Shown here: one piece after another, positions 6,412 to 24,610 of the stretch
How the letters are laid out: every line of letters starts with the position of its first letter
Numbering within the stretch: position 1 is the stretch's first letter
NCBI GenBank assembly: GCA_025786725.1
Contig: JAHLTZ010000010.1
Location: forward strand, 682,001 to 746,000
Reading direction: 5' to 3'
DNA length: 64,000 nucleotides
Source: Syncephalis fuscata S228
Lineage: Eukaryota > Fungi > Zoopagomycota
The notes under the pieces: model-generated
Database searches by the model: none
The model's input: the letters and a program-made list of their open reading frames with translations, nothing else
Told to the model about the DNA's origin: nothing
Program-made: the position numbers and the translations under genes

Positions 6412-6705
6412 TGACACTACTACTACTACTACTGGCTATTCTATTATCTTTTAATTGATAATAGATTAAATAAAATAATATTAAATTAATTAAAATTTAA
6501 TCATTGAAGATTGATTCTTGGGAAAATTAGCAAAATACATCGTTTTTAAATTTTTAAATTTTCCATTTTTTCCATTTTTATAAAATAAATACATTGTTTT
6601 AAGTGTTACCATAATAAATTGTTCTTTTGAAGCTTAGTATAATAAATAAAATAATTGTTTTTTAATTTTATTTGTTGAAATACACCGTTTTGAAAAATCT
6701 AGCAA

Positions 6706-6981
6706 ATGTCTACCAAACTATATAAAGAAGCTATATTTAACAGTATTGAAGAGCTGAGGGCCGCTGTTGACAAGTTTAAGCTTGTTAGCGATTGCAGTTT
6801 TAAGAGGAAAGATAGTGATTCAACAAGATTACAGCTTATTTGTCCTCATGAAGGCCGTTCCAGCAACAAATTTCAGTTTGTTTTAATTGCCAGAAAGCAA
6901 AAAATTGGCCTAGTAAAAACTGTTCAATGCAATCTTGAACTTTTAATGACTGTCTATATAACTCTGGTAATGATACTATAA
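6706..6981 (+). pseudogene. Truncated MuDR-family transposase N-terminal DNA-binding domain
   Basis: FNSIEELRAAVDKF...FKRKDSDSTRLQLIC matches the MuDR N-terminal pattern (F.s.eelk.av..y...f...ksd..r...C). The ORF ends after 91 aa. Confidence 0.65.
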
Positions 6982-7274
6982 ATATATTATTAAATATATT
7001 ACAAATAATGCAGCTACATTTTCAAATGTAAATCAACAGATATACAAATAAAAGTATCAAAGTATGTACACATTTGATTATTTAATATACACTAACAATT
7101 GTAATGCTTAACAGATGCTATTATTTTTTATTACAAAGCTTGATTTGCTTTTGATTAAATAAAAAACGACATTGTTATAACACCAGTAATAAATGATGTA
7201 ACCTTGAGCAAGTAACCAAAGGAAAAATATATAAATAGTAGCTTAATCAAATATTATTGGATAATAAGAACTAC

Positions 7275-7620
7275 AAAGCTAAAAATGCTTGATAAGAAAA
7301 AAATTAATTATTATAAATGCAACAATTCTAATTTAAAACTTTGTTTATCTACATAATTTAATTAATGTAGCAATATTAACGGCAATGCCAATCGTGTTTT
7401 ATTTTCCAAAATACTTTCAACAACTTACTGGTGCAAATGCAACTAACAAACACAATACAAAAACATGCTCTGTAAGGATTAGGATTAATAATATTGACAC
7501 AGTAGTTAATATTGAAGCAATCGTTTTTATTGAATAGATACAAACTACTAATGAAACAACTATTAAGATAAAGAAAGTGTAATACAAACAAAAATGATTT
7601 AATTAATAAGTATTTTTTAA
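7275..7620 (+). repeat. Diverged direct repeat, copy 1 (copy 2 at ~13094-13400)
   Basis: AAAGCTAAAAATGC(T/C)TGATAAGAAAAA...ATAAATGCAA...AATTTAAAAC and ATACAAAA.ATG / AATGAAACA.CTAT blocks occur colinearly in both copies. Confidence 0.8.
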
Positions 7621-8854
7621 ATTTAAATTTAATCAACAAATAAAATTAAACTGGTTATTTAAAGCGTTCAATATCAATTTAGCAATTAAATAATTCGAAT
7701 TACATGAAAGTATTATTCCTTTGATCAACTCAAATTAGTTAGTTGGTCATCAAGCAAGAGTGAAGATATGCAAAATAAAGCCGCCAACATGGCATTTGTC
7801 ATTGATAAACTAGAATAATCTACTCGTAACATTATTCTTAAATGTCGCAGTAGTTGCTCCAATATTCTAATTTAGAAAAGTTATGGAACATGGTAAAAAA
7901 AGCTTAAGAGGATGTTGTGGTGGATTATTTAAACCACTTGCTTTGTATTAAATCTTATGATATTTTCATTAACTAAATAAAGATAACTTTTCACAATATT
8001 AAGCACACTATTGGTTGTTTAATCTGATTTGGCAGTTAAATAGTTATAATAATCACACATTTAAACCAGCTATTTATTTTATTGAAGATGAAAATGGGTG
8101 TTGAATGTCATTGATCATTAAACTATTTACTTATCATTATTATTGTACTGTACATATCTATCCTGTATACATATATTATATGTCCATCTATATCATTAAT
8201 AATGTAAATTATAAAAACTATATTAAAAAAAGCTAAAAGTTTATTGCTAACTGTATTCTTTCAGTAGTTTTTGATTCATTTCGTTCATGACTCTTGGTTA
8301 ATTGCATACAGTAGTTTCACTATCATTATTCACATATTCGTTCTGTCTACTTATTTTGTATTATAATATTTATGCTTTATTGCCATGTTTTATTAAAAAA
8401 CGCTTTTATTCTAATTTCAGCATAATGTTACTTAGCTATATGATAATGATAGCTTTGCTACTATCCATACCAATCTATACCTATAGCTTAGGCAATATAT
8501 CATACACACTTTGTTATTAATTTAACTATTTGATTAATAATTGTCAATTATTGGATACAAATAGAACATGATTATAGATGTAGCAATTTGATTGTATATA
8601 TCTAAGATGAAACCATAATTTATTACTATAAGCTTACACAGTTGAATAGAAACAACTAGATGCAAACTTGTTAATAAAATAACGATTCCATTGGTTAAAG
8701 ACTGGATAAACCGGAGCATTGGCCAAAACTTGATATATAAATAGACTGGACGGCGTAGTTGTCAAATGGTCTTGATTTTCACCGAATATATACCTAAAGT
8801 GTATTGGAATAATGGCTTGATTGCACTACCAATGCTGATGTCTTGAAACCATGA

Positions 8855-10498
8855 TTATGCTGTATTTACAAATAAAGATATTATATGTCATATAATTAAT
8901 GTATAAGCCATCGATATGCAATACTACTTACACGCTGTTAATATTAAATAATCAATACAGTCAGTAAATAGCGTGGTTAATATATGGTCAGTTAATATAC
9001 AATAGTACTTACGGCCTATTGATATTGAATTATTTATAGGCATAACACATGGTATGTAATTAGTGCATAGTCAGTTAATATATAATACTACTTACATGCT
9101 ATTAATATTAAGATAGTTATAGTTATAATGTATGGTGCATAATTAGTGCATAGTCAGTTAATATATGATACAACTTACGGTCTATTAATATTAAGTTGTT
9201 TATACGCATAATGTATAATACATAATTAGTACATATTAATTTAGTATAATACAACTTACACCCTATTGATATTGAATTATTTATACGCATAATACACGGT
9301 ACATAATTAGTATATATTCATTCAATATATAATACAACTTACAGCCTATTAATATTAGGTTATTTATACGCATAATACATGGTACATAATTAGCCAGTAG
9401 TCAGACAGTATATAATACTACTTACCAGCTATTAATATTAGGTTATTTATACGCATAATACATGATACATAATTAGTGCATAATCAGCCAATATATAATA
9501 CAACTTACTCCCTATTAATGTTGTTATTTATACACATAATACATGGTACATAATTAGTGCAGCCAGTTAATATATAATACAACTTACATACTATTAATAT
9601 TAATATAGTTATAGTCATAATGTATAATAAATAATTAGTGCAGTCAGTTAATATATAATACAACTTACCAGCTATTAATATTAGGTTATTTATACGCATA
9701 ATACATGATACATAATTAGTGCATAATCAGCCAATATATAATACAACTTACTCCCTATTAATGTTGTTATTTATACGCATAATACATGGTACATAATTAG
9801 TGCATAATCAGCCAATATATAGTATAACTTACAACCTATTAATATTAAGTCATTTATACACATAATACGTGGTACATAATTAGTGCGTAGTCAGTTAATA
9901 TATAATACAACTTACATGCTATTAATATTAAGTTGTTTATACACATAATACATGGTACATAATTAGTGCATAGTCAGTCAATATATAATACAACTTACGT
10001 TCTATTAATTTGAATTATTTATACGCATAATACATGATACGCAATTAGTGCATAGTTAGTCAGTATATAATATAACTTACTTGCTATTAATTTGGATTGT
10101 TTATACGCATAATACATGGTACACAATTAGTACATAGTCAATCAATATATAATACAACTTACGTTCTATTAATTTGAATTATTTATACGTATAATACATA
10201 GTACACAATTAGTGCATAGTCAGTCAATATATAATACGACTTACCAGCTATTAATATTAAGTTATTTATACGCATAATACATGGTATATAATTATTGCAT
10301 ATTTATTTAATCTATAATACAACTTACCCCCTATTAATATTAAGTAGAAATACTGTTAGTAAGCATAATAATATGATATATCTATTGTTATTGCAACATA
10401 CCAGCACGACGAACTAAGGCTGGATTAGCGCCCACCATGGCTGTACTGGCCGCAAGAGCCACGACAATGGTGCAAACGACGGCAATGGAAAGCTTCAT
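8855..10498 (-). CDS. Secreted 51-aa prepropeptide encoded by 20 exons, 18 of them 3 nt: MKLSIAVVCTIVVALAASTAMVGANPALVRRAGAEPKPCWTVWTGWYPCPS
   Basis: Exon 1 is 10498-10402 (97 nt, signal peptide + RR, donor GTATGT). 3-nt exons (lowest + coordinate) at 10328, 10245, 10163, 10081, 9999, 9916, 9833, 9752, 9669, 9588, 9509, 9426, 9343, 9260, 9179, 9096, 9013 and 8932, each flanked by (T/C)AG and GTAAGT. Last exon starts CA TAA at 8859-8855. The joined frame is open throughout. Confidence 0.85.
8925..10345 (-). repeat. Tandem array of 79-83-bp units, each one intron plus a 3-nt exon
   Basis: Minus-strand consensus GTAAGTTGTATTATATATTRACTGACTATGCACTAATTATGTACCATGTATTATGCGTATAAATAACYTAATATTAATAG-NNN, with CTAAT branch-like motifs. 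Confidence 0.95.
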
Positions 10499-10629
10499 GG
10501 TGATATTTATTTGTTAAAACAAACAAATAAGAGAGATAATAGAGTGTGGTTGGTATAGAGTAGAGAGTAGTGCGTGTATAGCAAGAAGTAGAGTGTGATG
10601 ATGATATCGCAGTTGGTTGTGTATATTTT

Positions 10630-10646
10630 GTGGGCTATTTAAGCCT
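10630..10646 (-). promoter_or_regulatory. Possible TATA-like element of the micro-exon peptide gene
   Basis: TTAAATA about 140 nt upstream of the ATG, followed by a CT-rich leader and ATCACCATG start context. Confidence 0.3.
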
Positions 10647-10789
10647 ATGGCTATGGTGAGATTTCAGTGTACTGTAGTATACGAGATATATCATTGATAT
10701 ATAATATGAACCAATAAAGCAAACCCAAAAATGGTTTAAGGTGTATGTGTATATTAATAGATTGGGAGTGTGATAGTATGCTTCTTAGC

Positions 10790-11320
10790 TTTGACTTCAA
10801 CCTGCCCAGTCTTGATTTCAACCTGTTTGGCCTTGATTTCAACCTACCTGGTTTTTACTTCAATCTTCTCGGCATTTACACAAATGATACGGCAATTCCA
10901 ATGAGCAGTGCATATACGATAGAGATATGTACACCGTTCTGTGTTTTTTGTTTCACGGTCTAACTATTTGATAAAAACAAGTATATTGTTTGGTTTTGTG
11001 AAAACGATAATGGTGTTTTTCCTGTTACTTCCACCGAATGACTCGGGTCCCAACATCTGCATGCATACAAAATAACACATAACTTGCCCGGTCTTTATTT
11101 TAATCTGTTAGTCGTTTGCACGATTACTGTGATGCTGTTTATAATTTAGTGCATATACGATAAAAATAGATATTAGCCTGTATTTTTGTTGCACAATCTA
11201 ACTATTTGGTAAAAACAAGTATATTGTTTGGCTTTGTAAAACGATAACGATGTACTTGCCGCCATTTCTGTCGATTCAGTCCTCAATATCTGTTGCATAC
11301 AGAATAGCACACAAAACTGA
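10790..11320 (+). repeat. Four 21-bp tandem repeats followed by a diverged ~240-bp tandem duplication
   Basis: TTGA(C/T)TTCAACCT units at 10791-10870. GTGCATATACGATA...CTAACTATTTG.TAAAAACAAGTATATTGTTTGG.TTTGT occurs at ~10908 and ~11149. Confidence 0.8.
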
Positions 11321-13632
11321 TGCAAAAACAAGCTTAATGTATCAAACTGGTATTTTATACAGGTTTTACTGCCATACATAAGCCAATTATAATTCCTTAA
11401 ATTATAAAGTGTGTTGATTGGTATATGTATGTATTCCATTCGACACTATGCCCATTGTTATGGGGCAATCACTGCTTTGAATTTACAAATCCATTACATT
11501 CAGGCATATTATGTTACATGTTGCACAATTATCATCATTCAAATGGCGGTTAATCCAAATTACCTGAACTTGACTATACAATAAGTACTGTTTGTAGAAT
11601 AATGCATCACAGTATTTGGAGCAATGGAACATTCCAACAAGCATTTTCGTCATCAGCTTTCAGCTTTAAACTAAATTGCATCGGCTAAATTATACGCAAT
11701 ACAATATGCAGACATTAGACTAGATACAATAAAAAGTTCTAGCCAAACATCAGCAATTTCAGGTGCATAATAGCAATGGATTGCATATGTGCTGTTTATA
11801 TTTCTAAAATCAATTTTGACGAGTCAAGCAAAATGGATTATAGAAGAACAAGCCAAACCAGAAACCAATGAAAAAACAATTGGCATCTTAAAGGCTTACT
11901 GGCTTAGCTTATAGCAAATCATTATAGCTATGCTAAGCCGGACTACATTTATCAAAAAGTTGGCTGTTGCTGATGCAGCTAAAACAACAGTAACGTTAAA
12001 CCGAGATAACGCACAAAAAACGGAGAGATGTAAATAAAATTGAATAAATAAGTTTAGTAATTAAATAGCTTATTGTTGTTGCTATAATTTATAATTCTGG
12101 TTATTTGTGCGGATAAATATTTACAATCACATTGTTTTCTTATATGCTTACATTTATACAACCACTAACTAAGCCAACTATTATAAGAACTAATTTAATC
12201 ATTTATTAGAGTAAGCAGCTAATATTATACATTATTGCAATAATAGAAAGACAGATTAATTTTATTTATTGACCATTAATAAAAGTTGTATAGCTATATT
12301 AAAATAAAACAAAAATAACAAATTGAACGCGTAATAGTATAATTAAGTCATTTTTACTTCGACTCCACGTCTTTTATTTACTCATTTTACCATCTTTTTC
12401 TTATTACTATCTTATTGTTTTATTTTGTAGTATATTATCCAATAATGCCAAATATAACAATATAAATAGCATGCGTATTTGAACATCAATAAAAACATTA
12501 TTTAATCCCTAGTCTTTATTTTTCTTATTTTACATCAACACCTGTTCAAGTAACCTCAACGGCATGTCGTATATTCTGGTTACAACTGTCGCCACAAGAT
12601 CTTCCTGGTAAATACACTCAACCTATCATTATTACATATGATGGAGGCCATTTGCTTGATCAATGATTGGCAAATAATCTGCACCTATCAATTTGATACC
12701 AAGTATACTCAAGAGAATGGTGAACATTAGAAATGCTAGCCTCCTATCTCTTTGTCACCATAGACGAGTATTTACATTGAAAATATGCCCAAATACAACA
12801 GTAGAAGCTTAGCAGATAGAAGTGACCATTTAGATACAAGAAACCACACTGTACGTAGTAACAGCAACAACAACTGCGGAATAACATGGAATCGCAATCA
12901 ATGGCTTTTATTAATATTCAATCAATCTTTCTACACATGGCTAACAACAACAATAGGCTCCGCGAATTGCAAAGTAGTTGAATAAAAACATTATAACTAT
13001 GTTTTTTGTACATAACAGCATTTTTTCAATTAAAATCAATTTTGCTTTGAAGACTCAAAATATGAAAGTTAAAGTAAAATTGGCAAATTTTGAAAAGCTA
13101 AAAATGCCTGATAAGAAAAAGTTAATTATGATAAATGCAATAATTTTAATTTAAAACCGCTTATTTACGTAGTATAGTTTATTGCAGCAATACTAACAGC
13201 AATCCAATTGTGTTTTATTTGTTAAAAAACTTTTAACAATATACAATACAAAAATATGCCGTGTAAAATTAGTACTAATAGTGTTGAACTAGTAGTTAAT
13301 GTTAAACGTCTTTTATTAAACAAATACAAAATAATAATGAAACAGCTATCAAAAAAGAAAAGAAAGTGCCATTAAAAAGTATTTAATCTGAGGTAAACGG
13401 CATTACAAAAAACAGTGTGGACAAATAAAATGATTTTATCAATAAACAAATTTAATAAATTTAAAACGGAGAATTTATTATGGGGAAATTTAAAACAGTG
13501 TATTTTCCTAATTTTCCTTTGATTCTTTTTTCTTTTTTTTTTAATTCGCCACCGATCTTCATCGCGTGTATCTGTGTGTGTACATCTGCACTTGTACGGC
13601 TACTACTTTACTTTACAGTTCGTTTATATACC

Positions 13633-23639: not shown

Positions 23640-24520
23640 TTTGAATAAACACATTGAAATGTTAGCTTTTTAAGACAAATACAACAATTATGTTTATTTT
23701 AAAAATAAATTTGAATGATTGGATATACACATTAAAATGATAGCTTTTTATTTAAAATACATACAACAGTTATGTTTGCTATGATAATAATGACCAAATG
23801 ATTGGATGTACACATTAAATGTTAGCACCTCATATAAAATAACTACTAATTATGTCTGCTACGATAATAAATGACTAAATAACTAAATAACATATTAAAA
23901 TGTTAGCTTTTATTTAAAATAAATACAACATTATGTTTGCTATTATAATGAATGACAAATAATTGAATATACATATTAAAATGTTAGCTTTATTAAAATA
24001 ACTACGTAATATGTTGCTATGATAATAAATGACTAAATAACTAAATATACATATTAAATGTAGCTTTTATTTAAAATAAATACAACAGTTATATTTGCTA
24101 TGATAATAATGACAAATATTGATTACACATTAAATGTTAGATCATATAAATAACTACGTAATTATGCTGCTATATAATAAATGACTAAATAACTAAATAT
24201 ACATATTGAAATAATAGCTTTTTATTTAAAATAAATACAACAGTTATATTTGCTATTATAATGAATGACCAATGATTGGATATACACATTAAAATGTTAC
24301 TTATTATAACTACGTAATTATGTCTGCTATGATAATAAATGACTAAATAACTAAATATACATATTGAAATGATAGCTTTTATTTAAAATAAATACAACAG
24401 TTATGTTTGCTATGATAATGAATGACCAGATGATTGGATGTACACATTAAAATACTAGTTTTCTCTAAGATAAATACTGCAGTTATGTTTATTTTAATAA
24501 TAATGACTGAATAATTGAAT
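23640..24520. repeat. AT-rich minisatellite, ~80-bp units with alternating A/B higher-order structure
   Basis: Recurrent ACA(C/T)ATTAAAATGTTAGC...TGCTATGATAAT..ATGAC. Units alternate AAATACAACAGTTAT and AACTACGTAATTATG. About 11 units. Confidence 0.9.
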
Positions 24521-24610
24521 AATGCTACTGATAAAAAATAACTTTTTAAAATAAAGCGAATAAAGGCGAACGTGAAACTATTGTAAAAGAAAAATATGTT
24601 ATGTCATTAG

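Follow-up and report, generated by a model that had tools for sequence, protein, structure and literature searches.

On the minus strand of the window, by which we mean the whole 64,000-nucleotide stretch of Syncephalis fuscata S228 DNA that was analysed, lies a gene in which a leader exon is followed by a long run of exons of only three nucleotides each and by a terminal exon (Table 1). The window is fungal and intron-rich. The first-pass annotation had described phase-1 introns and 3-nt exons at this position, and its stated facts about the sequence all proved correct. The array coincides with a tandem repeat (8987-10345; period 83, 16.5 copies, 83% matches) whose unit, read on the minus strand, consists of three bases preceded by an intron that has a GTAAGT-type donor and ends in an AG acceptor. 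Three-nucleotide AG/GT(A/G)AG candidates number 18 in these 1.4 kb, compared with 6 in the other 62.6 kb (both strands), and the structure of the array is far beyond chance. Introns 2-17 are ∼82% identical and carry a branch-point-like word ∼44 nt before the 3′ end, and the GC content is 47% in the micro-exons versus 25% in the introns.

Table 1. Positions of the features of the micro-exon gene and of the repeats within and around it (window coordinates; L numbers denote paralogous loci).
Feature	Position	Strand	Remarks
Conserved upstream region / 5′ UTR	10499-10700	-	85-90% identity to DNA upstream of L001, L002, L003 and L006
TATA-like word	10635-10642	-	putative promoter element
Leader exon (exon 1, coding part)	10402-10498	-	97 nt with phase-1 end; holds the start codon, a predicted hydrophobic signal peptide and a short pro-piece with dibasic RR at its end
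Array of 18 three-nucleotide exons	8932-10330	-	intact AG and GT in register at 18/18 junctions
Micro-exons, first nine in transcript order	10328, 10245, 10163, 10081, 9999, 9916, 9833, 9752, 9669	-	low coordinate of each (+2)
Micro-exons, last nine in transcript order	9588, 9509, 9426, 9343, 9260, 9179, 9096, 9013, 8932	-	low coordinate of each (+2)
Introns (19)	8860-10401	-	GT-AG, all phase 1, 71-80 nt
Terminal exon	8603-8859	-	2 coding nt, stop codon 8855-8857, then conserved 3′ UTR
AATAAA	8619-8624	-	in terminal exon; putative cleavage site near 8603
Recent internal duplication	9398-9790	-	9641-9790 vs 9398-9547, 144/150 nt identical
Duplicated cassette	7263-12984	.	5.7 kb, gene plus kilobases of flank; 75-80% identity to L003 7322-14554
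310-bp direct repeat	7275-7579 and 13094-13368		

The 3′ UTR is 92-94% identical to those of L002 and L003, and the position of the 3′ end is backed by retrocopies, in which the sequence switches to an A-run at the equivalent site. Other acceptors for the last intron were considered and rejected, since the chosen one agrees with the paralogues. If every exon is included, the gene would encode a precursor of 51 aa comprising a hydrophobic leader, the RR pair and then about 20 residues, a Trp-rich mature part with three Trp and one pair of Cys nine residues apart. Our analysis upholds the earlier reading of a gene for a putative secreted peptide, with an architecture tied to peptide diversification.

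Other features of the window deserve brief mention. Interspersed repeats at 6678-7449, 12352-12974, 27345-28450 and 48277-48686 are common to many S. fuscata loci at 70-90% identity. Directly downstream of a probable sterol methyltransferase gene is an AT-rich tandem repeat (23644-24521; period 81/158, ∼11 copies), which we rejected as a second array because it does not match the micro-exon intron profile. A single-exon ORF at 46534-47007 (minus strand) was recognised by eye as encoding a putative secreted CAP-like protein, and had no match at E 1e-20.

Searches with the leader (as query, a 41-codon open stretch around exon 1, itself 32 aa) and with a family profile returned 18 proteins in total, all of them from S. 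fuscata (Zoopagales), and neither a 3′ UTR word nor the leader profile found a match in metagenomes. Paralogues were compared at eleven loci (L001-L011), all from one assembly. The window leader shares 79-88% nucleotide identity with paralogue leaders, a hydrophobic N-terminal leader is kept in at least 17 paralogues, and the RR at its end is nearly invariant. Five of the loci hold further arrays, with 40 (L002), 35 (L003), 28 (L006), 17 (L007) and 29 (L009) internal exons, nearly all of 3 nt. The few of 9, 15 or 33 nt lie at the 5′ side in L007 and L009, while those of 6 nt are preceded by shorter introns, which fits a shift of the acceptor inside the unit. In six arrays the all-included phase-1 frame runs open to a stop that lies in the terminal exon or beside it; in L009 this exon is uncertain, and L002 has one 2-nt exon within a G run, translated with X, which is either an assembly error or a real break.

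Two more arrays, at L010 12373-15340 and at about 2740-3960 of L011 (minus strand), are pseudogenes in which the ATG has changed to ATA and the splice sites are decaying: only 3 of 10 are intact in the ATG-less L011b, while those of intact genes are retained. Each lies near an intronless member of the family, of which there are seven, sharing leader and 3′ UTR with the arrays. The NCBI models of P0002, P0003, P0004, P0005, P0007, P0012 and P0015 are apparently wrong, either running on into array introns or, in intronless copies, placing a false intron within the 3′ UTR. A GC-type donor is found at one unit in four arrays (L002 11327, L003 10908, L006 11398, L009 11122); its sharing, and that of 6-nt exons at a similar early position, suggests that some unit types predate the gene duplications. 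The L004 locus contains, at 8700-11160, a nest of processed copies, with two intronless genes that have different mature peptides and near-identical 3′ flanks, as well as a degenerate leader copy at a 1270-bp period; the nest adjoins two Dicty_CAR receptor-like genes. In L007, the 15-nt exon at 10315-10329 encodes a second dibasic site, KR, before a short Gly/Phe-rich peptide, and this pro-piece resembles those of P0009 and P0018.

The paralogues would yield mature peptides of several kinds: a helical hairpin with six Cys, other folds rich in Cys, or a short peptide rich in Gly. For P0016 the mature part was modelled as a helical hairpin with a pLDDT of 89.5, and a full-length single-sequence model had low confidence. 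Pfam, PDB sequence and Foldseek searches with the intronless paralogues returned no significant match, the best structural matches having E above 5. In the arrays a Cys codon is assembled from the T of one exon and the G and pyrimidine of the next. Three arrays encode six Cys in their native order versus about two in shuffled orders (P 0.004, 0.003 and <5e-5); for the two Cys of the window gene the excess over shuffled orders is not significant (P 0.27).

The intronless members of the family allow the inclusion of exons to be examined. We cut the intronless genes into phase-1 triplets and aligned these to the exon lists of the arrays, expressing the score as z relative to shuffled exon order. 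L003 and P0016 align in 36 of 36 blocks in order (73/108 nt, z 8.5), with their differences spread evenly over the exon positions (10, 13, 12), which fits fast protein change. P0001 aligns with L003 (z 6.4) and with L006 (z 6.3), while unrelated pairs reach z of at most 2.3; P0001 departs from L003 by seven gapped blocks, which may be skips or genomic indels. A second, independent subfamily gives gapless matches of 14 consecutive L009 exons to P0010 (z 11.0) and P0012 (z 8.3), and the mismatches fall mostly on the second base of the exon, which is the wobble position in the predicted frame. An exon-by-exon comparison of the window gene with the intronless paralogues found no intronless copy of its own peptide.

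The origin of these copies can be read from their ends. In L004, L005, L008 and L011 there are runs of A5-A6 ∼17 nt past the AATAAA, which no intron-bearing gene has, and similarity to the intron-bearing genes stops at the A-run. The intronless copies at these loci combine the absence of introns with an A-run and the loss of parental flanks, and at P0016 alone there is also a target-site-like duplication of 14 nt (2 mismatches). A-runs where similarity ends, together with that duplication, lead us to regard them as processed mRNA copies. L001, which has parental flanks, and L010, which has no A-run, both look like cases of intron loss in place. We conclude that the colinear intronless copies are strong indirect evidence that mRNAs including all of the exons exist, with the proviso that retrocopies may have been filtered by selection and hence overstate inclusion.

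Six inserts of ∼350-820 nt were also seen, in L002 introns 2, 8 and 23, L006 intron 9, L007 intron 15 and at L010 12851-13343. With their T-rich 5′ ends they resemble antisense truncated non-LTR retroelements, and two have clear target-site duplications; five of the six lie 10-25 nt past the donor, suggesting a target preference, and the L006 and L010 copies are 98.6% identical. Such retroelement-like inserts in array introns point to a source of reverse transcriptase.

Several features of the arrays point to change at the level of DNA. An intron tree groups introns 2-17 of the window gene in a single clade (support 0.96) and has 32 changes of gene label, compared with a mean of 74 in shuffles; the first and last introns of the window gene resemble the first and last introns of the paralogues. 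The recent internal duplication repeats exons 8-9 of the window gene as exons 11-12, with introns 9 and 12 identical and a Trp-Thr pair doubled in the peptide, and similar duplicates of units are present in L002, L006 and L007. Where both flanks of an exon pair reach 93% identity or more, the exons themselves still differ at 58-65% of bases, and at 55-71% for each of the three positions, the wobble base included; 57 of the 65 such pairs come from L002. Selection on point mutations would not easily account for near-random divergence of this kind, which would fit either conversion tracts that end inside introns or swaps of cassettes. L003, L006 and, weakly, the window gene share an order of exons but not of introns. 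Exons 2-16 of the window gene align with blocks 5-19 of L003 without gaps but weakly (P 0.01), which suggests an L003-like ancestor from which units were lost or replaced, the introns being homogenised later.

Our preferred explanation for this set of results is that the gene is expressed mainly as an mRNA containing all exons, and that its peptides are varied mostly in the genome, by shuffling of units, rather than by wholesale skipping; we think this probable. The family would have arisen from a minisatellite, each repeat of which comprises a phase-1 intron and a 3-nt exon, with a constant leader exon on one side of the variable array and a constant 3′ UTR on the other. The short introns, having strong donors and a branch-like word, would be recognised by intron definition and removed in sequence, each 3-nt exon being joined to the growing upstream exon. 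The main mRNA would then carry every exon in order, encoding signal peptide, RR processing site and mature peptide, and the precursor would be secreted and cut after the RR by Kex2-type cleavage, as are KEX2 substrates (PMC6339444). Unequal crossing-over and gene conversion between near-identical introns could insert, remove, double or exchange single units of codon length while always preserving the frame, and whole cassettes would duplicate as well. Reverse transcription of spliced mRNAs would give intronless copies, each freezing one variant.

A reading that we consider unlikely, yet the best placed of the rivals, is that diversity arises at both levels: the full-length form would be the commonest, and skipping of a few per cent per exon would add a cloud of minor secreted variants. 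It had been noted in the first pass that any skip preserves the frame of the window gene, and this stands, all of its array exons being 3 nt and all introns phase 1; symmetry in multiples of three would, however, follow automatically from tandem duplication of one unit. Exon skipping is documented in the micro-exon genes (MEGs) of flatworms (PMC4015677), and low rates would suffice, as we calculate that 5% skipping per exon leaves only ∼40% of window gene mRNAs and 17% of L003 mRNAs at full length. The same 5%, however, would destroy the Cys frame in ∼60% of the products of Cys-rich paralogues, and in L002, L003, L006 and L009 stops arise from single skips. Taken at face value, 49 inclusions out of 49 in colinear stretches bound skipping at about 6% per exon or less, which permits skipping of a few per cent; it is important to note that selection on retrocopies weakens this bound.

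A strong form of the first-pass proposal is a combinatorial RNA library, in which interchangeable splice sites yield up to 2^18 isoforms from an exon order shaped against stops. We regard this as very unlikely. The introns are indeed near-identical, and no junction formed by skipping in the window gene yields a stop, the AA-starting exons being the 3rd and 5th and the first exon to end in T being the 6th; the 2^18 skip patterns would give 145,780 distinct peptides, at least two Cys being retained in only 14.5%. However, the stop-free property is missing in all five paralogous arrays, where 49, 48, 31, 4 and 17 junctions make stops, and the four arrays for which a null was computed have shuffle means of 38.5, 42.2, 33.9 and 8.5, which is chance level. 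The accompanying caveat that freedom from stops might be chance was well placed: it occurs in 2.8% of shuffled exon orders, and in 7.8% of those whose full-length frame is open. Therefore, stop avoidance is not a design of the family, and we reject it as a design feature of the window gene. Both the colinearity of intronless copies with all-included models and the enrichment of split Cys codons in native exon order speak against such a library. With skipping set at 50%, not one of the 20,000 L003 or L006 products simulated retained both Cys motifs, and a retrocopy with all 35 exons would be negligibly likely, yet one exists.

Gain of introns, rather than their loss, is a further alternative, in which the intronless genes would be ancestral and an introner-like element would have been inserted at nearly every codon. 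Conserved exon order without conserved intron order, near-random exon divergence beside almost identical flanks, and the longer 5′ exons of L007 and L009 would all be compatible with it. Nevertheless, we find it highly improbable. Poly(A) remnants and truncated flanks mark the intronless copies as derived, and the 6-nt exons with their shorter upstream introns fit an acceptor shift within a unit. In the window and the eleven loci the intron profile matches arrays alone, bar one weak match, so that near-identical introns in unrelated genes, the mark of introners, were not found in ∼270 kb. Furthermore, we know of no mechanism that would insert introns at a strict 3-nt phase-1 spacing. That the array is a non-coding minisatellite with chance splice-like words, in a gene that is unspliced or dead, accords with NCBI paralogue models that do not use the arrays, but is scarcely credible given the colinearity with intronless genes, the Cys enrichment, the wobble-biased divergence and a splice-site decay confined to ATG-less copies.

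If the all-exon reading with variation in the genome holds, the family would offer a natural test of how, and with what fidelity, the spliceosome joins consecutive 3-nt exons. It would also allow tandem intron gain to be studied cleanly together with reverse-transcriptase-mediated intron loss, as genes in either state occur next to one another. A literature search covering few subscription journals found no description of such arrays in Syncephalis or any fungus, and with up to 40 consecutive exons, nearly all of 3 nt, and an intron per codon, the family appears to be a limiting case of exon-intron structure. Syncephalis is a parasite of other fungi. The gene family, which gene finders mis-annotate, may represent hidden secreted peptides of this mycoparasite, candidates for effectors or antimicrobials, and we judge the arguments evenly balanced on whether the peptides act against or towards the fungal host or competing microbes. 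More tentatively, the family might be a two-tier diversifier, in which homologous introns serve as recombination handles in the genome, regulated or stochastic skipping samples nearby sequences at the mRNA level, and useful variants are made permanent as intronless genes by reverse transcription. Were that true, it would have no described counterpart, with peptides written one codon at a time in the genome.

Several known systems invite comparison. Conotoxins have a constant signal/pro region and a fast-diverging, Cys-rich mature region in one ordinary exon; the Syncephalis family shares the constant leader and variable mature part of such families, which are without its codon-unit repeat. Plant and animal microexons (1-15 nt, missed by annotation and usually in the major isoform; PMC8831610) are likewise tiny coding exons overlooked by annotation, but they occur mostly singly in ordinary genes, whereas here 17-40 consecutive ones make up the whole mature peptide. 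In its predicted signal peptide, dibasic RR or KR and short peptide, the family resembles KEX2-processed precursors, including the α-pheromones of Ascomycota (PMC6339444), and the window peptide has two Cys and several Trp, as do subgroup I α-pheromones (PMC6339444). α-Pheromone precursors and other KEPs encode repeated peptides, however, while the window gene encodes a single copy and the mature parts of its family are highly diverse, with no sequence homology to these precursors detected. We therefore rejected assignment as an α-pheromone, there being one peptide copy and no XA/XP dipeptides in register after the RR. L003, L006, P0001 and P0016 recall plant α-hairpinins (PMC11591084) in having paired Cys motifs on a predicted helix-loop-helix; there is no significant fold or sequence match to these, and the likeness does not apply to the two-Cys peptide of the window gene.

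The closest structural parallel is with the MEGs of the flatworms Schistosoma, Echinococcus and Hymenolepis. A MEG is defined by at least 7 exons, of which at least half are <70 nt and divisible by 3, in runs of at least 4 (PMC7653826), and the window gene, with 20 exons including 18 consecutive ones of 3 nt, falls within this structural definition. In both groups a signal-peptide exon precedes many short symmetric exons that encode most of the mature protein, and the genes form multigene families in transposon-rich surroundings and encode secreted products of parasites (PMC8293314, PMC4015677, PMC7653826), secretion being predicted here from the leader. Homology to flatworm MEG families was not detected, the leader and family-profile matches all being S. 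fuscata proteins. Exons of flatworm MEGs are described up to 36 bp, whereas those of Syncephalis are almost all 3 nt, so that every codon is split, and the Syncephalis introns are short copies of one repeat, accompanied by numerous intronless retro-derived copies. The literature examined does not describe flatworm MEGs with single-codon exons, introns derived from a repeat or abundant retro-derived copies. Exon skipping is a hallmark of the flatworm genes, while the evidence from Syncephalis favours full inclusion with change at the level of DNA. The Syncephalis family suggests that micro-exon genes have evolved convergently in parasitic fungi and flatworms.
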